Shown here in pieces: positions 3,342-24,918 of a stretch of 64,000 nt of DNA. This stretch comes from Sphaerodactylus townsendi (lineage: Eukaryota), in the NCBI RefSeq assembly GCF_021028975.2, contig NC_059432.1, forward strand, positions 68,386,001 through 68,450,000, written 5' to 3'. The translations under genes were made by a program, and so were the position numbers. How positions within the stretch are numbered: the stretch's first letter is position 1; every line of letters starts with the position of its first letter. The notes below the pieces were generated by a model. It made no database searches and was not told the origin of the DNA. It worked only from the letters and a program-made list of their open reading frames with translations.

Positions 3342-4449
3342 ATTACTTTGCCACTGCATCAGGGTCTTATTACAATGGCACTTTAGCAAATCTATGTCCC
3401 AAGAGTTTCAATGATATATCACTACTATAAATGTTACAATTATTGTCTACTGCAGCAAAACACCAAAATTGTCTTGTGGTACTTTAAAGACTAACAGGTT
3501 TATTACTGGATACAACAGATTTTTACACCTGATTTTGGCCACAGTAAATCAGTTCCTCTTTAAGGTGTAACGAGCCTATTTATTGGTTTTTCATGAGAGG
3601 CTCACAAGTGGACCCAGGATCACACCCTGCTCATAAACACCTTTGCCAGCATGGTTACCTGTATGGCTGATATATCCCATCTGATAACACTGAGCAGTAC
3701 TACATGTCTGTATGCCATAAGGGTTTTTTTCCAGCAAGGGGAAGAAACATGACATGGACTCGTTATCTTTGTTATTTGGCCCTGGGACAAAGTACATACT
3801 TACTGACCAAATGGCTTAATGTTTTTGGGAGAAAAGTTGTACATATGAGAATTGAAACATATGAACAGGAGGCAAAGAATGTATGAAAGCAACTTTGGCA
3901 GGTTCTGGGCCTGTTCACGGATGCACATTTATCACACATTCACTGTAGCATCAAATGAGGATGCGTGCGCATGAATGAACCATTTAATCACTGTAAATGG
4001 AACTTTCACATCATCCAATGTTAACTCAAACACATTGTTTAATAGAGACAGTTCATATCCAGCTAAGACCCATCAAACAATGTACATACGTCTGTGAACC
4101 ATGGATCCATAAATCCCCATTCTGACAATATTATACATCTTACTATACATCAGAAACATTTACCCATTTAAAACATTAGTATTTAGGGAGGACATGCATA
4201 CTGCTGAATTTTTCAGATCTTTTAATTTCTTTTTTTAATGGGACATGTGCATTTGTGTTTCTGCCCAAGTCATCCATCAGATTGTGTAACATGGGCATAT
4301 ACCAGCATGCATATGGTATGTTTGGATCTGAACCTATCTATTTAAAAAAGAACTAGAAGGCAAGAAAACAGGACTTTGCTTAGTGCTGAACAGGAAACAA
4401 AAATGTACACAACCTACTATTACAGTCTCTTCCAAGGCTTTAAAAATAA

Positions 4450-5355
4450 TATCTTCTGTGCAATGGGTATTACAACACTACATCCATCTGCTTTTCCAAA
4501 CATCATAATGCACTCATTTGGAATTCATAGCCTTTATGCACTCCCATTCTATGTTATGTTTCATTGCTGATGCATATTGAAATCTCATGTGTCTGATCAC
4601 AAATTCTACTTCGTCACATTGCTTTTCGCCACCAATGATATTTGCTAATGCAAAAAATATACAAATAGTTGTCATCACGTTTATACCTAAAGCCACTGGG
4701 TAAATTCCCTGATCTTTCTCTTCTTTCCACATAAATGAATTTTCTCAGAACTGCACAAGTCTCTTATGAGCTAGGCATTTGAAAGGGCAGGCTAAGCAAT
4801 TTTTCTCCTCTGTAAACACCTAGTCGTGAAAGGTGCCAAAACCCTTCAAATCTCACAAAGTTGTGAATTGTTGTTTCTTAAAATCAAACATGAATTACTG
4901 AGCTTTTTTGCAATAAACTAGAGCTCTTCTGAATGACAGGACCAATTATATTTTCACAATGGGTGTATGTGTGCAGTCTACTGTGATAGAGTCACAGTCA
5001 GAAGTCGACTGTAAGCCCCAAAATCATCCTATATTATGCCACAAAGGTCAAAGATAACATTCTCCTTTTACTAACCATCTGATTGGTTATCATTTTTTTC
5101 TGAGTGAACCACAACCTTCCAGATATGGAGACAGTGGGGCCGGAATGGACAACATGAATACTTTTTGCAGAGGAAACTGCATTTTCTCTTTTAGCAGGCC
5201 TCTAGACATTACCAGGGTAAAAAAAGAAGCATCCAGATCAATATGAGGGCTGCAAGTGACTGAGAATGAACTATCTTTCCAGATAGCTTGATTCTATGGT
5301 AAAGTTGACCTCAAGTAAATTAACTGATTAATGTGCATTTCCAAGTTACTTCTTC
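4450..5355 (-). pseudogene. Decayed C2H2 zinc-finger array remnant
   Basis: Minus-strand fragments RSNLEMHIN (5327-5353), KCSFLCKK, VHSEKK, CLACPFKCLAHKRLVQ-[fs]-EKIH (4735-4798, C-x2-C-x12 spacing), GGEKQCDEVEF..RHMRF (4580-4633) and HRMGVH, separated by stops and frameshifts. Confidence 0.5.
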
Positions 5356-5626
5356 TGCCTTCCTCTACTGCGCTATGGCCTTTTAATATCTAGCACTTTT
5401 ACCTTGTGAATGTACCAATATAGGCCTAAACAAACCACATCTTAACCTTCTCAGTAAGCTAAAAGCCAAGTTCTACAGGTGTCATTGCTTTGGTGCTGTT
5501 GCTGTACATTTATGGAGCCCAACGTAATATCTACATCAACTTCCAATTGATCAGGTCATTTTAAGACCTCCTCAAACTCATTTCAGCTTCAACAAAAGCA
5601 ATTCCTCTAGCAATTCATATATGAAG

Positions 5627-6502
5627 TTAGCAGTTTTCATATTTGTCAAAAGTCTCATAGAACCCTGGTCTGACTTTTCTGATGCTCATACGAAGATGCT
5701 GACATTCATGAGGGACTGACTCGTCATAGCTAGTTGAAGTTGCAGTCCCAGTAATCCAGCCAGAAGATAAGCGCTTCCTTTTTGCCTTATGTGAAAAGTC
5801 TCCAGCTCCCTTGCTGCGTTCAAGAGAAGAGTCATCTTTATTCCTACTGGTGACTTCTTCATCTGGCAGTTCATCTCTACCAGAGGCCATTCCTTTACGC
5901 TTACAAGTTTCTTTCTCCTCTTCTGCAATCTTCCTGAAATGCTCCAGTGACTGTACTTTTCTCCGGCTTTCTAATGTTTCTGTTTGTTTCTTGTCCATGA
6001 AGTCCTCAAAGTACATTTTTCTTTCACTTCTCTGATCTTCAAGAAATTTCCACTCAATGTCTGTCATCTTCACACCACTGTATTGTTCCAGTTTCTCTCT
6101 TGTAACTGTATCTGTACAAAATATATCAAAAAGCTGTTCCGAGCTCCGGTTGAAGTCATCCGCTTTCTGTATAAACAGCTCATTTTTTCTTCGCTTTCTA
6201 GACTGATACAACTTGGAGAATTCCTCATATACCTTAAGTATATGGTTTTTTATGCTATGTGTTGCTATGGTGTACAAATTGCAAAATAACCAGTGTTCTT
6301 GCAAAAGTTCAGCAAGCAATTGGGCAGCATCTTCTTTGGATCGCTGCGCCTGCCCAGCCCTTTTAGGGTGCAGCAAATATAACATATTTTGAATGACATC
6401 CTTCTTTGTAGGCAGAATTCCTTGTGCAAATTCTGATGATTCCACATAATCAACAGTTCCCAGAGTTTTCTTCGCTTTTGCTTTAGTATCTAAAGCTGCC
6501 AT
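5627..6502 (-). CDS. Uncharacterised 291-aa protein, probably derived from the N-terminal region of a DNA transposase
   Basis: Intact 876-nt ORF; strong Kozak ACAATGG; polypyrimidine tract and CAG acceptor just upstream (exon starts at 6526); motifs LPTKKDV, LFDIFC, GVKMT..EWKFLEDQRSERKM; basic NLS-like KAKRKR. Confidence 0.7.
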   Translation of the reverse strand: MAALDTKAKAKKTLGTVDYVESSEFAQGILPTKKDVIQNMLYLLHPKRAGQAQRSKEDAAQLLAELLQEHWLFCNLYTIATHSIKNHILKVYEEFSKLYQSRKRRKNELFIQKADDFNRSSEQLFDIFCTDTVTREKLEQYSGVKMTDIEWKFLEDQRSERKMYFEDFMDKKQTETLESRRKVQSLEHFRKIAEEEKETCKRKGMASGRDELPDEEVTSRNKDDSSLERSKGAGDFSHKAKRKRLSSGWITGTATSTSYDESVPHECQHLRMSIRKVRPGFYETFDKYENC

Positions 6503-7699
6503 TGTTTCTTTCCAGATTCACTTCACCTGAAAAACTACAATAAAAAAGATATATATTTGAATCAGAACATTCATAACAACAAAAATACAAAAGCTTTTTG
6601 AAGCTACTAACCATCTAGGCCTGACATCAAAAGACTTTATGCTATAATACTATAAAGGACTTCAACATCTGTAATCAAATATTTTCTACACACCTTTTTC
6701 TGAACACCAATCTTTCTGAACACTAGCCTCAGATAAATTAATATAATAATCTGCAAAATTAAACTGTCCTATAGAGCAGTGTAGAGTATCAATAAGACTC
6801 TCATTACCTGTAACCTACATTTCCTCCAATCTTTCTGCTGGTTTTTATTCCCAGCAGAGAATGTGTCTAGGATACAGTCTAGTGACAACAAGAATCACTA
6901 CACACTGGTCACATTTTATTTATCACAGAAAGTAATTCCATGTTTTGGAAAACACCACCCTCACTCATAAGTTTTGTTTCATGTTACATATATACTATGG
7001 CTTCAACATGAAGTCTATATTCCAGCAAAGGTCCAGGGTTTCCCTATACTACAACAGCACTTATCTTATTGTCAGTGCATCAGAGACACCTGAGATCATA
7101 TATTAATGAGCAGTCCAATAATTGTATTCTGAACACTAAAAATGAATAGCATGGTGGCAAACCTTTCTTCAAATAATATGTTGCCGCATTTCCAGGGTCT
7201 CTGGGGATCTGGAAATCTTGTCTTCCCAGTAATATCTCCCACTGTTTTAAAGCCACTAAATTTCAGTTATCTGTGCTGAAACGCCAAACACTTTCTCAAT
7301 ATGAACATGTTCATGCATAATCCTATTGGCAAGACTGTCAGATTTAATCTCCAGAGCGTACTTAGACAGAATTTTCTAAAATATTTTAGCGACAGGTAAA
7401 GAAAACCTTAGACTGACTGCAGAATGGAAACATCCAAGAAAATAGCATCAGGTAGCATATACAGAATCCCATTTCCAAATTTGGTTGTCTACTTTGTCTG
7501 CTTTTAAAACACTGGGATACTGTCAAAAGATTCTCAAGCACACAATCGTAAACTTTCACAGCTTAATTGTCAAACTCAGCTGTGGAGACTTCAAGAACGG
7601 TACAGAAATTCTGAAATCCCATCCTTTTAAGCATATCTGAATGCAACGACAGACCAAGAATCGCGTTTTCCTAGCATCTAACAAAATCGGTTTATAGAG

Positions 7700-9300
7700 G
7701 TCATCAGGGGAACTACAATATGACTCTAAAAGCGTGTGTGTGGTGTGGGGGGGGCGGGTAAAAGAGGGAAAGATAGCTGGGAAAACGTTACTACGGAAAC
7801 AGAGATCTAAAATCGCTGATCTGACAGGAAACCCTAAAAAAAAACGCGTGCACAGAAGTGCCACTCAATATGCCTTAGGCACGGTGGGCACAGCGATCGA
7901 TCCTGCAAGTCCACCGACCTTAATCTCCACTTTAGAAAATAAGGCCACAAAACAACCCAGCAGGCAAAAACAACACAGGCTCCGTAAGGAGGATTGGGGG
8001 TGGGTGGGTGGGGCGCCGTCCAGAGTCCCTCCCCACCCCCAGGCCAGGCCGCCAGAAGTCCAGGCTTCACACGTCCCTAGTAAGCCGGCCAGAAGCGATG
8101 CATCTGGCTTGGCCAGCTGTAATCCCGCCTTCTCCTTCGCCCCAAGACCTGCCTTAGAGCCTCGAAACTAACCGAATCAGGTAGGGCGCCAGTCGCCTCC
8201 CGCCTGCGGCCCATCCGCCACCATCTTTGTGATCGTGAAGGAGCGCTACGCAGTGGGGAAAGGGAAATGGTCGCTCGATCAGCCATTTTGAAGAAGGGCA
8301 CCTCTCATACCTGGCAGCGTGAGCTCCTCTATCCCAGCGTCTCTATGACCTAACGCGTGAGTCTCAGTCACAAACGGTTTCTAAAAATCCGGGTGTTGGC
8401 AACTTGTCTTTCGTTCTCACTCTATATCTGAGGCGAAAAGTGGACCCAAGGGAATCTTTGAGTAAGGACGAAAAATAAGGGCACAACCGGGAAATAACAA
8501 CGCTCAATCGCTGTCAGGTAACGTTTACAGGTAGAAGAAGACCTTAGAATACAGGAAGAAAACCTGATTCTATAGGGGGGCGGGTTCAGCACATTCCTTC
8601 GGCGGAACCGATTGGTCTTTAGCTCGAAGCTGATTGGTCGTTGAGCCGCAACAGTCATAACGAGACGTTACCAATCTCTTGGGCGAACGCTAATGCTTCC
8701 AAATACCGAGCGCCACAACGGGCTCCGTTCTTTCCGGGGTCGTGGTCGGATTACCAACCAGATTCGGAGTAGGAAAGAACAAACACGCGACGGCCAGTCT
8801 AGGAACTGCGGTTTACTATACCTGCTGTGTTAATCCCTGTATTTCGCGCTGTCGGAATATGATTGGACTGCTGTAAGAGAAAAAAATGTAATAGTGGCCA
8901 ATAGCTGTAGAGTGAGTTGTAGGGCGCGGATTGGTTTTTTTCGTTTGAGTGATTGAGCCTTAGTAGCCAATGGCGGCGATCTGAGGTCTGCATGAGGATG
9001 GCCTTGGTACCTAAAGCTCCGTCTATCGTAGTCTGCTTTTACGGCAAACGTCAGGATTGGCGAGTGTGGAAATTCGCTGGGTGGACCGACTGGCGGGCAC
9101 GAAGTTGATTGGCGGTCCCTGTTGTTTATTTGTAGCCTCTGTTCCTCAGAGTCCTCTGAGCTCCCTGGCGAGCACGGAGGTCGTTTGGCTGTTGTGACTC
9201 ATAAACCAGCTAGCTTCCATTTTATTTTACCCAGAACCAGTCGCCCCTTCCTTCATTTGTAGCCCAAGTATTTTCTCTCCCTCCCGAGAAGAGAAGCGGT
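7700..9300. promoter_or_regulatory. CpG island / bidirectional promoter between SCLY and the minus-strand gene
   Basis: High CpG density; nine CCAAT/ATTGG boxes (8611, 8633, 8671, 8862, 8898, 8930, 8967, 9056, 9108); GC box 8575-8584; AATGGCGGC near 8969; genes diverge on both sides. Confidence 0.8.
8311..8500 (-). other. Probable non-coding first exon of the minus-strand gene
   Basis: Minus-strand donor CCAG|GTATGAG at 8311 inside the CpG island; YY1-like CAAAATGGCT just downstream (8281-8290); 5' boundary is approximate. Confidence 0.45.
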
Positions 9301-10211: not shown

Positions 10212-13200
10212 GTCTGTGGCTTGCCTGATTACTTTAGTGGCGGGGGCTGTTTTTCATAATGCGAAGTGCCAAGGTACTCTTACTTAAGCTGTGATTTAAT
10301 ACAGTAATCTGTCCAGTTGGATTTGGTGGAAATTTCTCCTGTGAAAATAAGCAAAGGATCAGGTTGCAAATCTCATGTGGAGATGTCCAGAAACAGTAAG
10401 ATTATTAGTTAATTTTGCAAGTATGATAACAAGAGCCACAAAGAGTCTGGGGGGTGTCAAATTCATCCATGTTTCAGATGAAATGCTTGTCAGAGCTGAT
10501 GTCACATTCATTAGTGTTGGAAATTTCAGAATGCTATTGCCAGCTGTTTAAATGTTGTTGCAATAGTTGTTCCAGGAGGCACTTTGTAAAAGCAGCAATT
10601 TTCACTTCCACAACCAATACATTATCTTCTACCTGAATAATGATAGTATTCGTACATCTAATTTCTGCTGCTTTGGTAATAACTTTCCTGTTTCATTTTC
10701 TGCAGCAAGATTTACATGGATTACAATGCAACTACTCCTCTGGCAACTGAGGTGATTCAGACAGTTTTTGAAGCCATGCAAGAAGCATGGGGCAATCCTA
10801 GCAGTTCCTATATAGCAGGTGAGAGCCAGCACACTATGAGAGATCTTGTTTTGCATTGAATGGGTCTTCAGCTGAAGCTCACTCCTTTGTTCAAGTCACT
10901 GGCAGTAGGGATTGTCAAGTGACCTGTGCAAGAACAGAGAAATACTTCAGTTGCTGAAGTAATCCAGATGTTCTTCCTCAAAGGAGCTCAGCTATTGCAG
11001 GAACATCACATTTTCCCATGACAGTTCACAGAGCAATCGGCTAATGGAAAAACATGGTGTTTTTTAGTGTGAAATTACAATTGACCTCAGTGCATTTAGA
11101 AGGGTATAACTCTGCTCAGGATTACATTGCTAGTCATGTTCATTCAGTTCGTACACCCTGGATGTTTTTCCATTGTCTGTTTTAGCTAATACATTACTTG
11201 GGTACAGTAACCTATTGTATAAATCATCAAGGCACTGACTATTGCTCTATATTAATGGCAATGAAGGAATAAGTTCCTTCATTCTTACTGGATTCTGTGC
11301 ATTTATTAAAGAAACAGAGATTGGTTATGTATTTATTTTAAACTGTTTTGAGCACTCCTGCACCATAACACTGATTTGAAAGAGAGCTAGCTAATACAAA
11401 AACAACCTAATTTTACTGATCGTATCGAGAAGTTCTGATCTGCTATTGAGTGTATAACTCAGTCGTATTAATGTCATTGGATACATTCTGGCATAAGTGA
11501 TGTGAGAGTCATAGGTCAGATTATTTTCAGTTTTATCCAGATCTTCAAGTTATTGTGATAAAATGGCCTTCTTCTGATAATTTTCTTTCTCAACTATCCA
11601 ATTTTTATCACTTATTGGAACACATGCTTGTGTCAAGACCACAGAGCCAAACTTCTGGATTTTTCCCTCCTATAAAATATTTGTGTTGTATTGGAATAAT
11701 ATTTGCACAGGCATGATGACCTTTCAGTATTGCTATCTTTTGAAGCCTTTTGTTTTCTTAATTATCTGTAAGCTAATTTTTGGGCCTTGATACTACAGGT
11801 CAAAGGGCTAAAGAGATCATCAGTGAAGCTCGTCAAAGTCTGGCTAGAATGGTAGGAGGGCAACCCCAAGACATCATCTTCACTTCTGGTGGAACAGAGG
11901 TGAGATTGAGGAGTTATTAGCTCTGTGCTGACTTGGAGGAGAGGCCAAAAGAGCAATCCATAACACATAAGCTGGTTTTCTGACATTAGAGCTAGTGTGA
12001 TCTACACATTTTGGCCTAGTCATTCTTTTAACTTCACCTTCCCCACATGGTTGTTGTGAGAATACAGTGGAGGAAAGAAGAACTATGTATATCAACTTGA
12101 GCACCTCAGCGGAAGGTGGAATAAAAATATAGACTTTATTTGTAATTTCAGGTTAAACTGAAAAACATCAGTCAGATCAAAAGAAAAGTTAGGCCTCTTA
12201 TGCAGAACAGGTATTGCTTTTATTTAAATCAGGTGACTCACCATATATTAATTTTTTTAGAGGATAGCTATGTTGGGCTACAGTAGACCAGCTAGATTCA
12301 AGTCCAGTAGCACCTTGCAGCACCTTGCAAATTGATTGTGTTACACCAAATAATGGTAGATCTGTTTCTAAGACTGAATCTGGAGTTCATTTGATTGATA
12401 GACTAGTGCATTGCCTTCCAAGGACTACATCTTAAAAATTGGATTTTTGTGTTGTGGAGAAACTAATAGGTGACTCTGGTATTTGTATCCTCTCCTTTTC
12501 TGCAGGCAAATAACTTGGTGATCCACACTGCAGTGAAGTATTTTAGAGAAAGCAACAAGCAGAGGTATGATGAGCATGGCAGTCCAAAGAAAACTCTGGA
12601 GATGTATCCACATTTAATTACATCTTGCATTGAACATGACTCAGTCCTCCTACCTGTGAAGCACTTGATGAAAGAACATGAGGCTGGTGAGCATCAGCCA
12701 CTGTAGAGGATGGTCAAGGATCACAGATTAATGATGCTTCTTATAGCCATTTTACTTTGAACTTCTCTTGATCAGCAGTTACAGCTTTACAGTTCTCAAA
12801 GAGGTGTACGAAATTAAATAAAAATGTAATAAAGCAGCAAAAGCCAGCAAGATAAACTTATTAAGAGTGATGCCTGCCTAAAATTTCAGCCCCCCCAAAA
12901 TGACAGACACACATTAAACGTGAAAGGCAAGGACAGTCTTTGAGTCCTGTTGAAATGGCCACTGTCCAAGATCTGCTGGAGCACAGCTGGTGGTAGATTT
13001 CATAGAGCATTGGTGATCACCACATTAGTTCGACACCGAATCCCTAAATGATCCTTCGGGCCAGATTTTAATGATCAGAAAGCTGCATGTAGGAGAAAGT
13101 GCACCTTCCGCTAACACAAGTGAAAATTGAAAAAGGCATGATAAGCATATGGTTAATTTCCAGTCTAAAGGAATTTCCACTTAAGGAATATTTCTCCCTA

Positions 13201-16200
13201 AAATATTCTTACTGAAGACAAATTCATTGAGCTGTGGCATTAACTTGTTTGAACCCTGATTTGCAGAAGCCACTTTAGTCCCAGTGTCCAAAGCAACTGG
13301 CCAGGTGGAAGTAGATGATGTCATTGCTGCAATCCGTCCAACCACATGTTTGGTTTCTGTTATGCTGGCCAATAATGAGACTGGAGTTATCATGGTGAGT
13401 TGGTCTTTTAGTTAGTATCATCCACATGTTCAAAGAAAAGGGGTCCATCTTTCTGTATGCGACAATGAAACTTAGAGAACAGTTCTAAGCCCATCCAGTC
13501 AGAATCCTCTGTCCAGTTAAGACAGAACTCTGTCGAATATGCATTGGAGAAATTTCACTGGTCTTTTTCTGTCTTTCTCACTGTTCTTCTGCATTAACTC
13601 TTTTTCTCATTATTCCTTTTCATGCTATGACATTAACTAGGCAAGTATTCTGTAGTTTTTTCAGTCAGCCTTATATTAGTTTTTCAGCAGCTAAATATAT
13701 TAAAGTACGCACACAAAATAAAACAGAAACATGGTAGAAAAACAGAAAATAGTAGGCACAGTATCAGATCAAGATAAAACTTAAAAATCTAAATGTCTTC
13801 AATTATTAGGTCAAATCTTATTATGAATCCAGATGATAATTGAAAGCTGAAAGACTCCATGGCTATAGGAAGCTATAATGTGCAAAGTAGCCCTAAGTGG
13901 TCATTTCTCTGTGTAAAATATTCTACAGTGGAATCAAATACCAGCCAGTAGTGTTATCTAGGATGGAGTTGCAGTCTCTCAATAATGTGGGGAAAATTAT
14001 CTCAGAGCAGACTGCTTTTTAATATTGCAAGAGGCTGGGTAGGGAATCTTTAATACCAGTGTATACAAAGCTCAGCTCTTGGAAGAAAATCCACAGAGGG
14101 GAATATAGGCAAATTTGACAATCTTTATTGTAGGGATAAGAGGTTCACAAGCACTTGATTTAATGCAATAAACACAGAGTTCCTAAGATATAAATAAGTT
14201 GGAAAATAGGNNNNNNNNNNNNNNNNNNNNNNNNNNNNNNNNNNNNNNNNNNNNNNNNNNNNNNNNNNNNNNNNNNNNNNNNNNNNNNNNNNNNNNNNNN
14301 NNNNNNNNNNNNNNNNNNNNNNNNNNNNNNNNNNNNNNNNNNNNNNNNNNNNNNNNNNNNNNNNNNNNNNNNNNNNNNNNNNNNNNNNNNNNNNNNNNNN
14401 NNNNNNNNNNNNNNNNNNNNNNNNNAAGAATATCCAGGGTTCAGAACCAAACGGCCAGCATCTGATTCCAGTGGGCAACACATTGGGCACAGTGACAAAG
14501 ACGGAAAGGTGTCTGTGGCACTGGGCAGTTGACCCTTTTGAGGGTAGAATTTTTATAGGGTGAAGAATGGCCTTTGGGAGGTGTCAGGACAACCTCTGGC
14601 AGGTGTCTGGATGGATTGTTTGAGAAACAGTACAGTTCATTGTAAGGTGGTCAGGAGAAGTTAGTTACAGAAGGGAGTATCTGGGTTAAGATAATCAGGG
14701 GAGGCAATGACATCAGGGCTCCTCTTGCTGCTGGAAATGAGTATCCATTCAGCAGGGCTACAGTATCATGTTGAGGGCACATTCTTCTTTGGCTGTGGAG
14801 CTGAAAATGTGCTGCTATGGCAAGCAAGCTGAGAGCTGAGTACAGAAAGAAAGAAAAATTCCTGGAAGTTCCTTGTAGATAGACCTGGCTATTGCCAGAG
14901 AATGGGATCCCCATCTCTGCAGTGCCAGCATCACCCTTTAGGTGATGGGATACTTGTGGCATTAGGGATACTTGTGAATAAGCACTCCCCTGCTATGCCA
15001 GGGCAGTATGATAATAGTAGGACTGTACGACTACTGCTTTTGTCAGAATGAAGCCCCCTGAACTCCTCCCTCCAACAAGGACGCCATCTTGGGATTCCAT
15101 ATAAAGATAGGAAATGCCCATGTGACCTGGACTGTGTGGAATCTGTAACCCACATGTTGTTATACTGTCCCTTCTATGTTCAAGATAGGGAAAAGTATAT
15201 ACCCTATGTATATACCCTATGTATATTCCCTATGTATATACTTTTCCCTATATACTTTTCCCAATACAGTGTATGGGTGCTGGAAGCTGTGGCCAAATTT
15301 TTAAATGGTGTAATCTTAAGTCGTTCTAACGTGTGTTAATTGGAATGCTGTAATGTTACGTTTTTGTTTATTTATATGCCATTAAAGGTATTTGACTTAC
15401 TGAACTCAGACCGTGTTTGTTTTCTCATCAGCCCATCTCAGAACTCAGTCAGCAGATTCAGCCTCTGAACCACAGGAGAGTGGCATCTGGTCTGCCACGA
15501 ATCTTGGTACATACAGATGCAGCTCAGATGATAGGAAAAGGCCAAGTGGATGTGCAGGATCTGGGAGTGGATTACCTCACTATTGTGGGGCACAAGGTAT
15601 GGTTAAAATACCCGTCTCCTCTGCAGTATCCAGGCTTGGGGTTTGTTGGGGAGATTTCTGTCAGGATTTGTTGAAACTTTTCATGTGCATTCAGGGTGTT
15701 GCGCTGTGAGGGAGGGAATTTTCCATTTTCTTATGCCAACCAGTTGACTTTTTTTACATTATAATCTTGTGGTGTACCTAAAAGGGCATGATGTACCACA
15801 ATTAAAGATTGATTTGCGTTTAAGCAATTTCCCCACTAGATGGTGCTAAACGTTCAAGATTTTCATGCTGTGACAGAGCAGTACAATGTTCTGTTATAGC
15901 TTTCTCCTGTTCTCTTTCAGGAGTCATCTAAGGGTTCAGGTAAAACCAAAGATATGATTGTTAAACTAATTGTGGAATTCAAAAGCATGATTATTTTAAA
16001 CACTCAAAGGCATTGACAACAGATGGAGGAAATATGTGGGCCTGTCAATTGCATAATTATAAAGAGATCCCAAAATGGTAGAAGGTGGTCAGCAACAATG
16101 TTTATGGGATCCATATATATTCTCAAGAGTTAATGTTCACTTCTCCACGCTGAGGAAGAACTATTTTTGTGAACCATGTTATTTTTAGTTTTCTTTCTTC

Positions 16201-19200
16201 TGTCTCATGTTAGGATCACTACTTAGTTCTCATCTGGGGTCCCATGTTATCTTTGATTTATTGTTGCAGTTTTATGCCCCACGGATTGGAGCTCTGTACG
16301 TGCGAGGACCCGGTACTGCTACACCTCTCCATCCCATGCTATTTGGAGGTGGACAGGAATATAATTTGCGTCCTGGGTAAGATAGCTGAAGAATGGGTGG
16401 GTTTATAGCCTTTGGGAGGCCAGTACTGTAATCTATGAGTAAAATATCCAGGGATTTTTTCTTTTGAGATTGAAGAGTTGCAAGATAAGGTAGTAAAAGA
16501 TAAGGCAGTAAAATACAGTAATCACTTTGAAGAGGTTTTCCTGTGAGCCTCATGTTCATATACTGGATATACATAGGCCAGTAACTTGAAGGCTCTTATG
16601 TTGAAAAATTGATATTGCTTAGCTCATTGACCATGTTATCAAGTTTAAGGGTATGCCAAAACAGTTCTTGTTCAGAAAATTGTCATTCATTGAAAGTGTA
16701 TGTAGTCTATTTATTCATAGCTAGTGCATGGTGAAGAATGTTTTGCAATGTTTGAAGGTTTTCATAGATGTTAAATAATTCTCTACTGGGTTTGGAACTT
16801 GTTTAGAGAAAAGCCCACAATTATAGCCAATACCAGAACTTTTTAGTTAACAAGATAAGATCTCTTTTTCCACTGAATAACTGAGCCAGTAGTTCCTGTT
16901 GGGTACTCCACCATCATCACTGTTAGAGTAATTGTTCAAATAGGTATCGCACCTGTGCAGCATGCATTGTTCTGTGGGAATCTACAAGCACTCTTCTCTG
17001 TTCTAGGACTGAAAATACACCAATGATTGCTGGTCTTGGTAAGGTGAGCTAACCTGTAATAATAAGACTATTGATGCTATCTTTGTTATTATCTTTGTTG
17101 TCCAGCTTGCACTTGTATGTTGTCGTCTTTCACTAAAATACAATTTGGAGAAAAAAGCACATATTCTTGTAGCAAGGCTGGGTTAAAAACTTAGATCCAG
17201 TGTTGCTGTCATATTTATTGAAAGTCTGCAGCAACACAACATAGCTGGGATTTTCCCTTGGCAGTTCACTTCTGTTTAGTTCTGCTTTTATGCCAAAGTA
17301 AGGGCAGATTTTGTGTTATGTTATTTTGATTGATAGGTGGAGCAAGAGCTCCCAGTGTGCATTATTTGCATGCCCATGCAGAGCAGGGATGGAGGAAATA
17401 GCTTGTTGCAGATTCAAGAGATTTCCCAATATTTGAGGGGCCACTTGTTGAGGGCTAGATGAAAGGTAACAGGCTGTGATTCTAAGAGTGTTGTTTAGAG
17501 CAGTTGGGGAAACTGTACAGTAACTGCAATTATGCAGGCAGCCTTTCAGTAGGGATATCACACTAGCTGTTAAATATATGGGGCAGGGGTGCAGAGTATT
17601 CTAAACAGTGTTCTAAAATGCCTCATGGAGAACATATGCAGATTTTCTTGTCTCTAAGGGAGCAGTATATATATATGGGTACTGGGCTTCATTTTAGCTG
17701 ATGGTTCCCTTGGAGATGAATGGGAGAATGCTCATGCAAAATTTTTCTGTGTAGATTTTCTACTATCCCTGATAAACTAATCCCTTAGATCAATATAGGG
17801 AGAGGCATTTCAGAGACCTGTAGGATTATATTTAGATAGGTTAACAGTGCTATCCCAGCCCTTCATCTGGTAACTGGTCACTTGCTTTAATTCCATTGGT
17901 GTGGACATTCTAGGGACATATTATTCTCCTGCTTTATTTGTCAAACTTGCTGCACCAAGAAACATAGTTTTTCTTTTGCAGGCAGCAGAACTGGTGAACA
18001 AGCACTGTAAAGCATATGAAACTCACATGAAGAAAATCCGGGATTACCTGGAAGAGAGGCTGACAGTAAGCACCCTTTTGTGCCTTGATTTGCAACCTTT
18101 GTGGGGGAAAGGATATGGTTTCAGGAAAACTGCTTATTTATTTAGATATTTATATCTGGCTTGTCATTGTTGTGTCTACAGTGCAGTCTCGCATGGCCAA
18201 TGTGTGCCAATGCGTGCCTGCAAAGAAGACAATCAACGAACAACTTTTACAGGTAAGTCCAACTTTGTTTTCTTCCCCCTGGGGGAATCAGTAATTGAAA
18301 AGTATTCTTTTTAATATTCCAGGCTGTGTTTGAAGAACAAGGAATCCATTTCAACTGTCGACTGGAAGGCTCTAGGCGACTTTGCAACACCAGTAATTTT
18401 TCTATACTGGGCTCAGGATTGCAAGGTAACCCACTTTGCACCATTTCTGTATGGCTGCTGTCAGACCCAGAACATGTCATCCATATTCAACACAAAATAA
18501 ATGTTAATTTTGTTTGTCCAGTCCAGGAATGCATTGCTGGTCCAGTAATCTTTCTATTTGGACTAAACTACATTTTACTTCGATACATTTTAAAATTTTA
18601 TTTTGGGGCAAAAAAATTCTCCCCAGGGGCCATTTTCAGCTTGGGAAAAATTATTGGAAAGGCAGGAATTCCCCTTACACACCACAGTCCCGTGCAAGAT
18701 CGCCCCCCCTACGACTTTTAGAACAAAGTTTCCCGCAGGTGCTCTGGGGTTGGGGAAAACAAGGGTGCTCTGGGAAACCCATACCCAATTTGTTAAATGT
18801 ATTGTATATTTTGGCCATCTTGTCTGCTTGAAACAGGATGCTTGCTATGTTATTTAGAAAAGCATTCATCTCCTAGAAGAGTACTGAGAGGCTAAAATCA
18901 ATGGCCGATTACACACAAAGTTTATTTATTTATTACTTAGATTTATTCCACACCCTACCCCCAAAGGGCTCAGGGCAGCAACAACAATAAAAACTATTAC
19001 AATAAAACAGAAACAATCTTAATAAATAATTTAAAACAGTATAAAAATTTAAAACAGTGTAAGAGCTCAAAAACGGATGGCGACTTTCACTCACTTTATC
19101 CCCCCCCCCCCCCCGAAGCCAAAACAGATGACAAGCAGATGAAACTAGGGTTGGAGATTCGGACAGTCCAAATCCGAATTTTTACCGAATCTGCACGGAT

Positions 19201-22200
19201 TCGGACGGATTCGGACGAGCAGGAGCCGAATCTGAGCTGTCCGAATCCTAACAGATCCGAATCCATGGGATTCGGATTACCAGCCGAATTGCGTTTTTAT
19301 TTTTTGGTGTTTTTTTCACATTTCGGCCTGCAGGGGAGACATTTTTAAACATATCAGCACCAAATTTTCAGGGTATCATCAGGAGACTGATAGGGACACC
19401 CCAAAAGTGGTGTCCCTATCCCCCATTCTTTCCAATGGGAACTAAGGAGATGAGGGCTACCCTTTTCAGGGTCCATAACTTTGGCCCCCCTGAACCAAAC
19501 TGCACCAAACTTGGAGGGTATCATCAGGACAGTCTCCTGATGATACACTGAAATATTGGTACCGATACATCTACAAATGCACCCCCTGCAGGCACCCCCA
19601 GAAATTTGCACAAGATTCTTTGTTCTGCAGTGACTTAGCTGCATTGCTGTCAATAGGGAATTTCTGAGGGGGCTGTGGAGTGCATTTGTAGATGTATCTT
19701 CAGGAGAGTCTCTGGATGACACCATCCAGGTTTGGGGAACTTTACTTCCAGGTGGAAGTGGGAGATGGCCCCACCCCTTTGGGTCCCATAGAATTAAACC
19801 CCTGAAGCAATTTCCCCAAACCCGGATGGTGTCATCCAGAGACTCTCCTGAAGATACCCTGAAAGTTTCCTAGATGGGAAACCCGATGTGGTAAAAAACT
19901 GGCTGGCCTATGAAAAAGCCCGGCGGAACAGGTCCATCTTGCAGGCCCTGTAGAAGCCACTTAGGTCCCTCAGGGCCCTAACCTTAGAAGGGAGCATGTT
20001 CCACCAGGTGGGGACCCAGACTGAAAAGGTCCTGGCCCTCATCGTGGCCAGCTGGATGGTTTTTGGGCCAGGGACTACTAGAAGATTCTCCTCTGAGGAG
20101 CCTGCTTGTGTGCTATTTGCTGTGTGCTGGAGGAGAATGTCCATCGCAACCAGGTTTCTCTTACAGAGGTATTTCCTCTAGCCCCACTTTCACTTTCCAC
20201 TCTCTGGGGCAATCAGACCCACTTACAGCATGATTATAATTTTGCTTTGCTGCAAGAGCAGGACAGCTTTGCCCTGGATCTCTTCTCTCCACCTGCAGCC
20301 AGCTTACCTAGTCTTACCCCCCCGGCGCTGCTTTGCACGCTTTCCCCTTGCCCTCCTCCCTGTTGCCAACTACTTATTGCTTCTTATCCTGCCGTATAAT
20401 TTCTATTGCCCATGGTCTCCCCACTCCTGCATATCTTTAGATTTTAAAAAATCAGAAAACTATATCGATAGATTGATTAATCAATACTGACACTTAAAAT
20501 ATGTAAAAAATAAGACTAGTTGACCAGTCCAAACGCCCGATTTGCCTCTGCATTTTATCAACAGCCTCGTAGTTTTATACACAAGTAATCAGTGATTCCA
20601 GACCACACTGGGAAAAGCCCGTCAGTCTTGACGCTTGGGTTTACAGCACATCGGAAGACAGATGATCATGAACCTGCGGAACTAGCAAATGGCAGTTCAC
20701 ATTGTCCTTTGGGGGTTTTGCAGTTTGCATGCTGCCATTACTCCCTCGTCACTTCCCACCATAAAAGACAATCAGTGTTCAGGCAAAGTGTACAGATGCC
20801 GTACTCAAGACTTTTCTTTAATAATTTGCCTTTTCTATGTCAATGTGTCGATCTATTGATAGGTTGATAGAATGATATATTAATCTATTGATAATATTAA
20901 AAATAAAAATTAAAGACTCCATTAAAAATTAAAGAACACATGCATGATAGATATCCTTCAAAACATCCACACCACCACCACCCCTGCCTGGATGCAAGCA
21001 AAAAGCCACCTGGTGGGTAATGCCTGCCCCGCTGCAAACAGGGCAGTGGGTAATAATACCGAACGTGCCCTGAAACAAAGACTCCCCGGACAGTTTGAAG
21101 TCGCAGAAACCTGGCCGTGCGTAATCGGCCAATGTAACAGTTTTTATAAATGCATAATGGTAAAAGTGTGAACTTTTTACATGAAATATGAAATGCTCAA
21201 GCTTAAATGTTGAGCTTCAGCCTTTTAAATTTCTTAATATGAATTTTAGGCTTGTCAGGAAGCATTCCAATTTTGAACATACACACACCTGTACCTGACT
21301 TTTGCCATTAAAACTCCACTTTTTTCTTGTAAATATACATTTATTAAACAATTGTAAATGTATGATGTCAGTTGAGCTTTTTTATACATGCACATCTGCC
21401 ACACTAGTAAGAAGCCAGTCCTGGCCTAGTGTGGGTGGGGTGCTGGGCAGGTTGGCTTGGTTGTATATCTTGGCTGCTGACACAAAGGCTGTTGAAAGCA
21501 CATCCCGTGGTTGTTCATACACAAAGAGTCTTTGTACCTCTTATGAGATGAGTGAGGATCTCTGCCTTGACTTCTCTGCAGGTCGACTGGTGCTGTCTCG
21601 GTGTGGGACTCTCCTTGCCAGCGTTGGTGCTGCATGCCACTCTGAGAGGGGTGATGAGTAAGGAAGCGTATTGGTGAAACTGGGTATACTGGATTGGAGG
21701 GAAGAAGCCAAGACTGCAGAGGAAAGGATATAGAAACGTCGAAAACAATTTCTCGGTTTAGAACTGCAGCCTCAGATTTATAAATGACTAATGCTGTTGA
21801 GAATATCCCCAAAATAGCAACATGTAATTCTGTTGTGTGGGACCTGACTGTATTAATTATTTAATTGTGTTATTGGATTTGTACCTTGCCCTTTCCTGAT
21901 GGAAGATAGGCTCAGGGCAGATAACAATGTGAAAATAACAGTCATTTAAAATACCCAATACATTAAAAAAAAACCTCACATCAATTAAAATACCCATTGG
22001 CGCTCCAGAAATACTCAACAATTTCCTGGAATGACCAACCAAGGAGGAATGAACAAAAGGAATGAGTAAAACCCAATCAAAGCAAAACAGCTAAGAAAAT
22101 AAAGATAAATAACAATAGAGGCAGGGAGGCAGCAAAGATTTGACTGTCACTGTCTCAACCAGAAGCTTGGTGGAACATGTCTGTCTTACAAGCTCAGTAG

Positions 22201-24918
22201 AATTGTGCCAAATCCTGCAGGGCCCAGATCTCAGTTGACAGAAAATTCCACTAGGCCAGAGCTAGAGTTAAAGAAGCTCTTGCTGTGGTTGAGGACCTTC
22301 TTGAAACTTGGAGGTGTTGCATACTTAGATCATTATATGGTGAGAGGTAAAAACAAATTTTGATCTATTGGAAAAATAGAAGGCAGCAGTTCATCAGAAC
22401 CCTGGTTGAGAGAGTATTTGCCTTACATTCCTAGCCAAAGAACTGGATTACACAAACTATTCTTCCTCCTTGTGAATGCTCACATAGGAACTGCTTTTAG
22501 CCCACTCTTCTGGGACTTGCTGCAGATACTTCAGACTAGCCAGTGAATCAGTTGATCAGCTGAGTACTTGGAATTAGAATGTCATAAAATGCTTTCTCTC
22601 TGAAGAGAGGCTGCAGTATAGTGTGACAGATCAAGTGTCCCAGCAGTGACTTGCTACCCTGCTGTTGTGTGCCACTTATCACAACAGTGGAACAAGAAAG
22701 GAGAAACATGAACACCCACCTTCAGGCCTTATGTATCTGGCCTTGGTAGATTTTCCCCAGAATGTTTAAATTCCAGTATTATGTTTGGTTAGTGTGGAAT
22801 AATTTTTTAAAATCCCATTGAACAAGTAGATGTGGCAAGCTTATATCCAAACTGTTACCCAAGTAACTCTGGAGCCAAATCTGTAATCGAGACCTAACAA
22901 GGTTTTAGGCCTTCCCGTGGAAGGTCTGCCCTAGAAAATGTAAGCATACAGAAGCCAGTCCAGAGAATAGCAAACACTAAGAATTGGCACTGTATTTTAT
23001 TTAGTGGCCAGAAAGTCCTGAGCTAAGCTACACGAAGCAGTTTTGCCACAAGTGCTAATGCAAAAGCAGCAGTAGCAGCAAGCCTTTATTGGCATAGACA
23101 ACAGTACAACAATAATAAAAAACGGATTAAAAAGCATATACAATACAGGAAATAAATGTTAAGTTGAAGGAAATCTACTGGCATTTAGTAATTTCCAGGA
23201 GAAAGTCTGCCACTATCATACAGAGAGAAGGATCAGAATTGTCCAATAAGTAGTGTAATCTAATTAAATCGGGTAAATGTAAAGGAGTAAGATTCACCAG
23301 GTGCTAATGTCTGAGAGTCTTCATCACAGGCCTGAGGCCCCCTCCATCATCTCAGTCCTGACACTTAAGGGTGAGGTCAATGGCAATGTACTGGCAGACT
23401 GCTCAAATGATCGCTGGAACACAACACAAGATACGCACAAAAAAATGCTATAACTGTTTGTTTGTACCCAGAACTTGTGGAAACAGTGTGTGTTCCAGAA
23501 GATTCGGGCAGCTCTATTTCCCTGTTCCCCAGTTGGGGGTAATAAAGGAATGCATTCCCAGCTGTGGTTACCTGAGATAAGAGTACACTGTCCAGGTCAT
23601 CCAGCACACAAACAAAGCCAATCTTTTCCTCCACCAGTGTACGATATAAGGAGAAGATGGTATTTCTCATAAATCTGGCATTGTACAACCTCAAGGTTGA
23701 AGTGAAGGGTTCATTGAGCACCTTCCCCACCCACATGGAGCACAGACTGGATGTACAGCAAGCTCCTGAGCATCTCATTTTGTCTTTTACCAAAAAAACC
23801 TCCTCCTTCTAGACCAGGGGTAGGGAACCTTTAACACTCAAAGAGCCATTTGGACCCGTTTTCCATGGGAAAAGAAAACACTTGGAGCCGCAAATAATTT
23901 TTGACATTTAAAATAAAGATAACACTGTATATATTGGGTTTTTTAAACCTTTTACTCTGCTCATTCTGAGAAGCGCATGGATGCGTCCCCCCTGCTGCCT
24001 GCAGGGCGGGCAAGGATGGGGTCAGCGGCTCGGCCTTGCTGGCCACCGGGAAAGCGCTCGGCCCGCTCCAACGGGGCAGGCGAGAGGGGAAGCCCGCGGC
24101 ATGGCCCAGCCGGCCGCGGGCAGTTGGTGTGCCCGCCCTGCTGCCTGCAGGGCGGGCAAGAATGGGGCCAGCAGCTCGGCTCGTGGAGCCGCAGTACAAG
24201 GGCAGAAGAGCCGCATGCGGCTCTCGAGCCGCAGGTTCCCTACCCCTGTTCTAGACCTTCCTAACCTGCATAGCACTGAAATGCAATTAGAGGCCATGAT
24301 GGATGAACCGAAAAGCTAAGAGTAGCCAAAAATAGGTGCCCAGCAACACAAACTTCAGCAGGCATCCCATACCCTCTGCTCCATTGCAGGATGAGACAGG
24401 GGGATGGACACCGCCTTGCCCAGGGAGGGGAGGGTCTAGGAGGGCTGACCCAATTTTCCTGTTTCCCTGTGGTCTGGTCAGGAGAGAGGGTGCTGACTTC
24501 ACACATCCATGTGGTGTAGGGGTGGGGGTGATTGACATCCTAACTTAGGGCACCTAAAATCTTTGGTCTGGCCCTATTTAGGAACTCTGGAGAGATTAAG
24601 GAGACTTTCAAACTTATGTGTTCAGAACTGAAATGCAGGAATGCAGATCATCTGCTTTTCAGACATGTAATTTTTTCTTGGCTTTCTGTGTATTTCTGCG
24701 TTTCTCAGATGCAGTGTTTCTCTTTTAGACCAGGGCAACTAAAAAATCTGGCATTCCTTGTTTTGTTTTCTAGGCCATCCTCCATTTTGCTTGGTTGTGG
24801 AATTCCTTACCATGTGGCCCAGAACGCCCTGCGCCTCAGTGTGGGGCGGGATACCAGCAAGGAAGACGTGGACCTCATAGTGGACGATCTGAAGCAGGCT
24901 GTGGCTCAGCTGCAATAG
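10114..24918 (+). CDS. SCLY: Selenocysteine lyase, full gene span, 12 coding exons, 1338 nt = 445 aa + stop
   Basis: All introns GT-AG with consistent phases; motifs [37 protein letters not shown] (PLP lysine), GTENT, GAACHS (catalytic Cys), LRLSVGR. Confidence 0.97.
10706..10818 (+). CDS. SCLY: SCLY coding exon 2
   Basis: [18 protein letters not shown]...WGNPSSSY; AG/GT boundaries; 113 nt. Confidence 0.96.
11799..11899 (+). CDS. SCLY: SCLY coding exon 3
   Basis: [33 protein letters not shown]; 101 nt. Confidence 0.96.
12506..12686 (+). CDS. SCLY: SCLY coding exon 4
   Basis: [13 protein letters not shown]...[13 protein letters not shown]; 181 nt. Confidence 0.96.
13267..13394 (+). CDS. SCLY: SCLY coding exon 5
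   Basis: [42 protein letters not shown]; 128 nt. Confidence 0.96.
14211..14425. other. Assembly gap (215 N)
   Basis: Run of N in SCLY intron 5. Confidence 0.99.
14426..15405 (+). mobile_element. RTE-X-like LINE 3' fragment
   Basis: [34 protein letters not shown] motif; 3' end TGCCATTAAAGG resembles the copies at 23 kb and 44 kb; 5' limit uncertain. Confidence 0.6.
15432..15596 (+). CDS. SCLY: SCLY coding exon 6
   Basis: PISELSQ...[14 protein letters not shown]...DYLTIVGHK; 165 nt. Confidence 0.97.
15833..15848 (+). promoter_or_regulatory. Candidate CTCF site
   Basis: CCACTAGATGGTGCTA closely matches the CTCF core consensus. Confidence 0.45.
16270..16376 (+). CDS. SCLY: SCLY coding exon 7
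   Basis: [15 protein letters not shown]...[14 protein letters not shown]; 107 nt. Confidence 0.96.
17007..17043 (+). CDS. SCLY: SCLY coding exon 8
   Basis: [12 protein letters not shown]; 37 nt. Confidence 0.96.
17982..18065 (+). CDS. SCLY: SCLY coding exon 9
   Basis: [28 protein letters not shown]; 84 nt. Confidence 0.96.
18323..18425 (+). CDS. SCLY: SCLY coding exon 10
   Basis: [11 protein letters not shown]...[16 protein letters not shown]; 103 nt. Confidence 0.96.
18920..20100 (-). mobile_element. L2 LINE 3' fragment interrupted by a DNA-transposon insertion
   Basis: (TAAA)n tail near 18920-18935; ORF2 C-terminus LLVVPG...WWNMLP..VR...[13 protein letters not shown] at 19908-20100. Confidence 0.7.
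19146..19880. mobile_element. Non-autonomous DNA transposon fragment nested in L2
   Basis: Begins TAGGGTTG; subterminal CCGAAT/ATTCGG repeats; boundaries approximate. Confidence 0.5.
20150..20720 (+). repeat. Unclassified interspersed repeat, copy A
   Basis: Collinear similarity to the reverse complement of 54290-54900 and 50170-50360. Confidence 0.65.
21582..21657 (+). CDS. SCLY: SCLY coding exon 11
   Basis: [24 protein letters not shown] with the catalytic Cys; 76 nt. Confidence 0.97.
21855..22300 (-). mobile_element. Old L2 3' fragment
   Basis: L2-type 3' stem and tail, with degenerate ORF2 end similar to the other L2 copies in the window. Confidence 0.5.
23061..23300 (-). mobile_element. 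Short RTE-X-like LINE 3' end
   Basis: TGCCAATAAAGGCTT followed by a (TGC)n tail on minus; 9-bp TSD GTGCTAATG at 23052-23060 and 23301-23309. Confidence 0.7.
23815..24248. mobile_element. hAT (Charlie-like) MITE, 434 bp
   Basis: Perfect 16-bp TIRs CAGGGGTAGGGAACCT; perfect 8-bp TSD TTCTAGAC at 23807-23814 and 24249-24256. Confidence 0.95.
24774..24918 (+). CDS. SCLY: SCLY coding exon 12 (terminal)
   Basis: [28 protein letters not shown]...LKQAVAQLQ followed by TAG. Confidence 0.97.

Follow-up and report, generated by a model that had tools for sequence, protein, structure and literature searches.

A stretch of 64,000 nucleotides from the gecko Sphaerodactylus townsendi (contig NC_059432.1, positions 68,386,001 to 68,450,000; hereafter referred to as the window) carries an uninterrupted open reading frame (ORF) of 291 codons on its reverse strand, adjacent to an SCLY-like gene. 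The locus raises the question whether this frame is a leftover of mobile DNA or a working host gene and, in the latter case, from which source it was recruited and which function it might have retained. An earlier note on this DNA, made from the letters alone, had read the frame as a domesticated transposase-derived gene, an interpretation that is supported here except for its splice details. The gene is almost certainly domesticated and transposase-derived, and the full account, according to which a sauropsid gene originated from a truncated hAT-like transposase and retained its pre-catalytic module, is very likely.

Transcription, conservation and selection

The coding sequence (CDS; 5627..6502, reverse strand) comprises an ATG start, 291 codons and a TAA stop at 5627–5629, and resides completely in exon 2. 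It is documented by the ORF list, the orthologs, the RNA depth and the ratio of nonsynonymous to synonymous substitution rates (dN/dS). The earlier note had correctly recognized both the intact frame and its strong Kozak context (A at −3, G at +4); an in-frame TGA is found 6 codons upstream. The RNA evidence stems from two RNA-seq runs with the same species label, evaluated over 3400–9300. RNA depth amounts to 5–28x over 4385–6551, is lower over 3794–4384 and zero over 6552–7142. The sole junction in the reads, 6534|8173, is covered by 5 reads in one run and 6 in the other, i.e. 11 altogether. The skipped 1638 nt start with CT and end with AC on the forward strand, equivalent to GT..AG on the gene strand, and the donor GT and the acceptor AG are positioned at 8172–8171 and 6536–6535, the latter 32 nt before the ATG. 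Intron 1 accordingly spans 6535..8172 on the reverse strand, and the portion of the 5′ untranslated region (UTR) encoded by exon 2 consists of 32 nt (6503..6534, reverse strand; defined by the splice joint and the sequence) including the in-frame TGA at 6520–6518. The splice sites proposed beforehand did not hold. The AG at 6528–6527, considered as acceptor 24 nt before the ATG, is located inside the exon, the donor used is found at 8173 rather than at 6808 or 8311, and the reads show 8173|6534 instead of the expected junction 8311-6526. Expression itself was anticipated correctly, as was a 5′ exon located in the region common with SCLY and joined by splicing. The gene is real, transcribed and spliced.

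The non-coding exon 1 (8173..8320, reverse strand) is covered by RNA at ~2x over 8128–8324 and has a GC content of 0.56–0.65. Its 3′ end at 8173 is exactly defined by the splice joint, while its 5′ end is only approximate because the RNA library appears to be unstranded. The intergenic segment 8001–8400 has the same GC content and CpG observed/expected ratios of 0.59–0.91, in agreement with the GC-rich, CpG-containing stretch postulated between the two genes. Transcription proceeds from this GC-rich region, common to the gene and SCLY, via the non-coding first exon. At the other end, the 3′UTR (4200..5626, reverse strand) extends over at least ~1.4 kb with continuous RNA depth and no joints and contains ATTAAA at 4221–4239; lower RNA coverage continues beyond 4200 down to about 3800, and AATAAA signals are present at 3499–3584. 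A decayed C2H2 zinc-finger array in 4450–5626 was considered and rejected, as all six frames lack a C2H2 pattern or a TGEKP-type linker and the segment is transcribed 3′UTR. Within intron 1, RNA is also found over 7143–7930 at 1–2x and with no junction; it could stem from precursor RNA that had not been spliced, from another first exon or from a transcript that does not belong to the gene.

The RNA sample deviates from the window by 6 fixed differences in the 876-nt CDS, all of them (6/6) synonymous. About two dozen of the fixed differences listed fall into 3782–5572 (3′UTR and beyond), and in addition to these there are 15 more differences across the stretch. Considered over 3700–8600, their density in the UTR is roughly 1 per 100 nt. 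Fixed deviations of this kind indicate that the RNA donor belonged to a population other than that of the assembled animal or was a near relative of it.

Full-length orthologs of 274–316 residues, all annotated as 'uncharacterized protein', share 84–89% identity with the gecko protein in squamates, 66–69% in turtles, 58–65% in birds and 62% in Alligator. A partial UniProt entry is 100% identical to the gecko protein, in line with Sphaerodactylus townsendi as the source of the window. A word-index search revealed the intact ORF in more than 40 sauropsid species, and for each sauropsid species the protein searches yielded a single protein cluster. In Anolis, Sceloporus, Gopherus, Emydura, Alligator, Struthio and Accipiter the gene consists of a single coding exon oriented head-to-head with an Aminotran_5 gene. 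As the gecko window shows the same head-to-head arrangement with its SCLY-like (class-V aminotransferase) gene, the position is conserved in 8/8 sauropsids. The single-copy syntenic orthologs that had been named as a check of the gene thus exist in lizards, turtles, a crocodilian and birds. The word-index searches of annotated proteins, also when made with the family profile, retrieved no mammalian or amphibian protein, which fits the earlier suggestion of an uncharacterised sauropsid gene. As far as seen, the gene is confined to sauropsids (lizards, snakes, turtles, crocodilians and birds).

The dN/dS values, calculated by the Nei-Gojobori method (NG86) for all computable pairs of eight sauropsid CDSs, range from 0.06 to 0.28 for the whole gene, from 0.04 to 0.13 for the N-terminal domain and from 0.04 to 0.10 for the C-terminal tail, and reach up to 1.3 in the disordered linker between them. 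The stop codon is found at the same place in 7/8 CDSs and four codons earlier in Alligator. The coding sequence is under strong purifying selection, as had been foreseen.

Full-length relatives and the point of truncation

A word search produced 53–75 relatives of the ORF, among them proteins from starfish, amphioxus and mantis shrimp, and a family-profile search added two teleosts and a sponge. In an exhaustive profile search, 1,231 representatives of clusters passed E ≤ 1e-3 and 471 passed E ≤ 1e-10; many of them are fragments, and a few are proteins of 780–940 residues which extend past the sauropsid stop. For relatives from invertebrates and fish, this extension leads to a length of ~860–940 residues. 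The full-length member P0188 (942 residues) was modelled with a predicted local distance difference test score (pLDDT) of 82.7. Comparison of the model with the chains of the hAT transposase Hermes gave a Foldseek probability of 1.00 and an E-value of 2.4e-5, and Hermes is the best match with two independent structure aligners. Integrase cores cover P0188 residues 335–782 with only ~125 residues aligned, which reveals an insertion domain. A 41-sequence alignment, evaluated by the counts at each column, revealed conservation of D353 (35/37), D424 (33/34), C451 (26/26), H454 (24/25) and E732 (8/9); the combination of an Asp-Asp-Glu (DDE) triad with CxxH reportedly marks hAT elements and their allies (Yuan and Wessler 2011). 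By fold and motifs, the parent transposon family is hAT-like, with DDE residues on an RNase-H fold, an alpha-helical insertion and CxxH after the second Asp.

Known hAT transposases (Hermes; PDB 2BW3, 4D1Q, 6DWW, 8EDG) share with the full-length relatives the RNase-H-like core with a large all-alpha insertion, the residues D, D and E with CxxH after the second D and, judged by an amphioxus element, terminal inverted repeats (TIRs) combined with a short flanking duplication. Differences exist as well. The relatives contain no BED finger and have no Pfam hAT match; a Pfam search with nine long members returned nothing at E ≤ 0.1, including Dimer_Tnp_hAT, DUF4371/DUF659 and zf-BED. Moreover, their TIRs are ~150 nt long compared to 10–25 nt, and the one clean duplication measures 7 bp compared to 8 bp. 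This duplication belongs to an amphioxus element (L004, 9050–13504) with ~146-nt gapped TIRs starting with TAGGGGG and with TTTCCAG on both flanks as a perfect 7-bp repeat. The element is inserted in an intron of the unrelated CCDC85 gene on the opposite strand, and its ORF is split into two frames. A toadfish copy (L009, 9618–12066) has no SCLY nearby and an internal deletion; the ~150-nt repeats at its ends can still be aligned as DNA with the amphioxus TIRs, to which they are homologous. Its right end is degraded and offers no clean duplication, in a comparison in which two elements were inspected for target duplications. The protein identity between the toadfish and amphioxus copies is 70% over 522 residues despite the teleost-cephalochordate split, suggesting horizontal transfer of the element. 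These elements are cut-and-paste transposons. A separate observation concerns P0015 (Asterias rubens LOC117293082, 405 residues), an annotated starfish protein which contains two tandem N-terminal domains and no catalytic part; it may go back to a further domestication event, independent of the first, or to a gene model that is chimeric.

The gecko ORF aligns only to the N-terminal ~276 residues of these relatives, with residue 291 corresponding to P0188 residue 276. The truncation point is therefore 20 residues in front of the Hermes-alignable part and 77 residues in front of the first catalytic Asp (353), and the gecko protein has none of the catalytic features of Hermes. The resemblance to the N-terminal region of a transposase, originally proposed from motifs, is hence substantiated by longer relatives with a Hermes-like fold. 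The reported absence of a DDE domain and of TIRs was likewise confirmed. The ORF contains no DDE domain, a tblastn search of the 64-kb window (E ≤ 10) found neither a catalytic-domain remnant nor a second copy, no inverted repeats flanking the ORF were detected, and the terminal motif of the transposon family does not occur anywhere in the window.

What was cut off has nevertheless left traces downstream. Translations beyond the stop in 8 species contain shifted-frame, stop-broken remnants of the next transposase segment, which can be seen best in turtles and alligator but are recognizable in birds and lizards as well. In the gecko, the proximal 3′UTR fossil of P0188 ~277–340 (5427..5626, reverse strand; based on shifted-frame translation, tblastn, profile hidden Markov model and DNA alignment) is visible only as a short shifted-frame piece, LEVDVDITLGS, at ~5505–5546. 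A tblastn search with the next transposase segment matched remnants in Emydura and Struthio. When a profile of P0188 277–346 was run against 291,418 six-frame residues from eight 20-kb loci, the 6 best matches were all situated within ~200 nt past the stop, on the gene strand and colinear (Gopherus 1.3e-4 and 8e-4, Alligator 1.2e-3, followed by Emydura and Alligator with 0.12, 0.18 and 0.25). These post-stop remnants show that the gene arose from a longer transposase ORF by truncation and not the reverse. The proximal 3′UTR DNA is alignable in all eight sauropsids and contains invariant blocks; the deepest pairs retain 0.5–0.6 identity, a value inflated by the optimised alignment, while their synonymous sites are saturated (dS 1.4 or more). 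The fossil may thus be kept by selection on RNA or DNA. The aligned block corresponds to 5330–5626 (reverse strand) in the window and to about 300 nt after each stop in the loci L001–L003 and L005–L008.

In an IQ-TREE analysis the 13 sauropsid proteins form one clade with a support of 100/100 which is nested in the transposon family; within it, squamates oppose turtles plus (alligator plus birds), as in the species tree. According to these data, which we take to establish the origin, truncation, age and vertical inheritance of the gene, it arose once and predates the last common ancestor of the living reptiles and birds. A hAT-like DNA transposon became fixed beside SCLY, and its transposase ORF was cut short about 77 residues ahead of the first catalytic Asp. 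The surviving protein consists of a helical N-terminal domain of ~160 residues, a long helix, an acidic linker with a cluster resembling a nuclear localisation signal (NLS) and a basic C-terminal tail. Neither the DDE/RNase-H core nor inverted repeats or a target duplication remain, and the protein is thus unable to cut or mobilise DNA; as it is kept intact and expressed, a useful role for the host can be deduced.

The vertebrate ZBED genes, DAYSLEEPER of plants and Kat1 of yeast resemble the gecko gene in being hAT-derived, single-copy, immobile, syntenic, selected and expressed. They retain a BED domain or some other established DNA-binding domain and mostly also a large part of the catalytic or dimerisation region, whereas the gecko gene contains only the pre-catalytic module, which has no known fold match. 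In domesticated hAT genes, the host mostly exploits the DNA-binding part (PMC4091102, PMC3499209).

Architecture of the protein and its possible function

The AlphaFold model of the gecko protein has an overall pLDDT of 79.6, which exceeds 90 at residues 10–160. The globular N-terminal domain (residues 8–165; 6008..6481, reverse strand), a helical bundle with a small beta hairpin, includes this well-predicted part and preserves all family-wide core residues, namely L30, P31, W71, D126, E139 and M146. It is followed by a long single helix (residues 166–207, modelled as helix at 171–205; 5882..6007, reverse strand) and a disordered acidic linker (residues 208–262; 5717..5881, reverse strand) with a pLDDT below 50 and an isoelectric point (pI) of 5.7, the fastest-evolving part of the protein. 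The linker accommodates the basic cluster KAKRKR, a putative NLS already highlighted by the earlier note, at residues 239–244 (5771-5788, reverse strand), and a basic cluster is also present at the corresponding position of the orthologs and the transposon proteins. The basic C-terminal tail (residues 263–291; 5630..5716, reverse strand) contains the motif HIR..RKVR..FY and a short helix; its residues H269, R271, R275 and V277 are conserved in the transposon family.

In Hermes, the N-terminal residues 1–132 serve DNA recognition and multimer building. Since the retained module occupies the position of this region and is accompanied by an NLS-like cluster, nuclear DNA or chromatin binding appears to be the likeliest mechanism. 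The protein might enter the nucleus and bind DNA or chromatin via the N-terminal domain and the basic tail, acting as a regulator and not as an enzyme. By analogy with Hermes, we tentatively regard it as a nuclear DNA- or chromatin-binding regulator, to which we assign slightly less than an even chance.

Several points weigh against this assignment and against the evolutionary account behind it. DNA binding is deduced from the place of the domain in the architecture alone. A Pfam search with the ORF assigned no family to the N-terminal domain, two family profiles found no match among PDB sequences, and Foldseek with the gecko model found nothing in the PDB at E below 1. A wide structural search with the same model returned only generic coiled-coil or long-helix matches to residues 166–207, by which the N-terminal domain was barely probed; because the long helix filled this search list, a new fold cannot be claimed for the domain. 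The N-terminal domain is only mildly basic (pI 8.7) and devoid of a zinc-finger pattern. A zinc site formed by H70, C74, C129 and H269 was considered and rejected, the candidate ligands being only partly conserved in the family. A homodimer prediction for residues 1–212 provided evidence neither for nor against self-association. On the evolutionary side, the tree is rooted at the midpoint only, and the absence of the gene from mammals and amphibians refers to annotated proteins, not to genomes. Searches of the ESM Atlas by shape yielded only unnamed eukaryotic clusters which probably belong to the same family, a first query by features gave no usable match, and HeH and DUF4518, obtained by features with scores of 0.76–0.79, were discarded because these values are within the range of shuffled proteins.

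The best surviving alternative, which we consider possible but rather doubtful, is a protein-interaction scaffold or adaptor acting independently of DNA, whose N-terminal domain was perhaps once the multimerisation or host-factor-binding part of the transposase. The missing recognizable DNA-binding fold or zinc finger and the mildly basic character of the domain are in line with this role, and a long helix combined with a disordered acidic linker is common among adaptors. However, the conserved basic tail and the NLS-like cluster better match a nuclear protein binding nucleic acids. Furthermore, the equivalent region of Hermes binds DNA, and 4D1Q and 8EDG are the top fold matches for the adjoining part.

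A trans-acting repressor of the parent transposon, which would poison transposition by occupying the transposon ends or by forming dead multimers, is improbable. The architectural model for it is KP of the Drosophila P element, which also consists of the N-terminal part of a transposase and a helical region and lacks the catalytic domain; the likeness is confined to architecture. KP has a THAP domain and is encoded by mobile copies with internal deletions. A repressor agrees with the combination of N-terminal module, long helix and NLS-like cluster in the absence of a catalytic core, with the preservation of residues common to active-looking family members, and with the presence of such members in other vertebrates (teleosts). 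In contrast to KP, however, the gecko gene occupies a fixed host locus of roughly sauropsid age with no cognate transposon seen nearby. The window harbours no other copy or terminal motif, each sauropsid species has a single protein cluster, and a repressor deprived of its target would not be expected to have kept its dN/dS at about 0.1 ever since the ancestor of the sauropsids. The homodimer prediction adds no support for self-association.

The reversed direction, in which a transposon captured a host gene and the sauropsid gene represents the donor, is very improbable. The midpoint rooting and the lack of relatives of the N-terminal domain among known transposase domains would permit it, but a donor gene is not expected to carry 3′UTR remnants of the transposase beyond the common module. 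The sauropsid clade, moreover, sits on a single long stem deep in a family reaching from sponge to teleost, and no syntenic ortholog turned up outside the sauropsids; the copy in toadfish has TIRs and no SCLY nearby. Finally, the frame could belong to a transposon copy that is recent or in decay, or could be open by chance in a transcribed pseudogene. This would suit a region described earlier as repeat-rich and relatives that are mostly broken fragments, but is refuted for practical purposes by the intact ORF in more than 40 species, the common position and stop, the dN/dS far below 1, the exclusively synonymous fixed CDS differences, the lack of TIRs and the spliced mRNA.

Returning to the nuclear regulator, a more far-reaching joint reading may be formulated, which we regard as unlikely in its entirety: the N-terminal domain would be an undescribed DNA-recognition fold of a widespread, Pfam-invisible hAT-like family, which sauropsids recruited roughly 300 million years ago to serve as a nuclear regulator with sequence specificity and no mammalian counterpart, and the 3′UTR fossil would be under selection because the RNA element has a regulatory role. 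New regulators have arisen from domesticated transposases time and again, and the majority of the vertebrate examples known so far was found in mammals. The phenomenon is well known, but this particular gene and its retained domain are not described; in the library searched, no paper on LOC424740 and nothing on the gene or its family was found, the gene ('LOC424740-like') is annotated everywhere as 'uncharacterized protein' and the retained domain is absent from databases. The case is clean and old, runs across the sauropsids and stands out by an unusually complete chain of evidence, which leads from a transposon family still living, via the truncation point and the coding fossil in the 3′UTR, to synteny, selection and expression. 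It offers a testable candidate regulator for bird and reptile biology, with chicken and Anolis as tractable models, and, for transposon biology, a handle on the role of the N-terminal module in the hAT-like family.

The SCLY-like neighbour and downstream surroundings

The neighbouring SCLY-like gene is found on the forward strand of the window, where exons 2 to the last are conserved over 10707..24912. They were identified by tblastn with pieces of the ostrich gene (52–89% identity) and by a Pfam Aminotran_5 match with an E-value of 5e-8, confirming the head-to-head arrangement with SCLY named in the earlier note; exon 1 is probably located at ~8330–8900. A run of 215 N at 14211–14425 lies within an intron of this gene. 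On the other side, an HSR/PHD gene (SP100/SP140-like) follows the ortholog on the same strand in ostrich (L002, 15793–18611) and goshawk (L006, 16413–19394).

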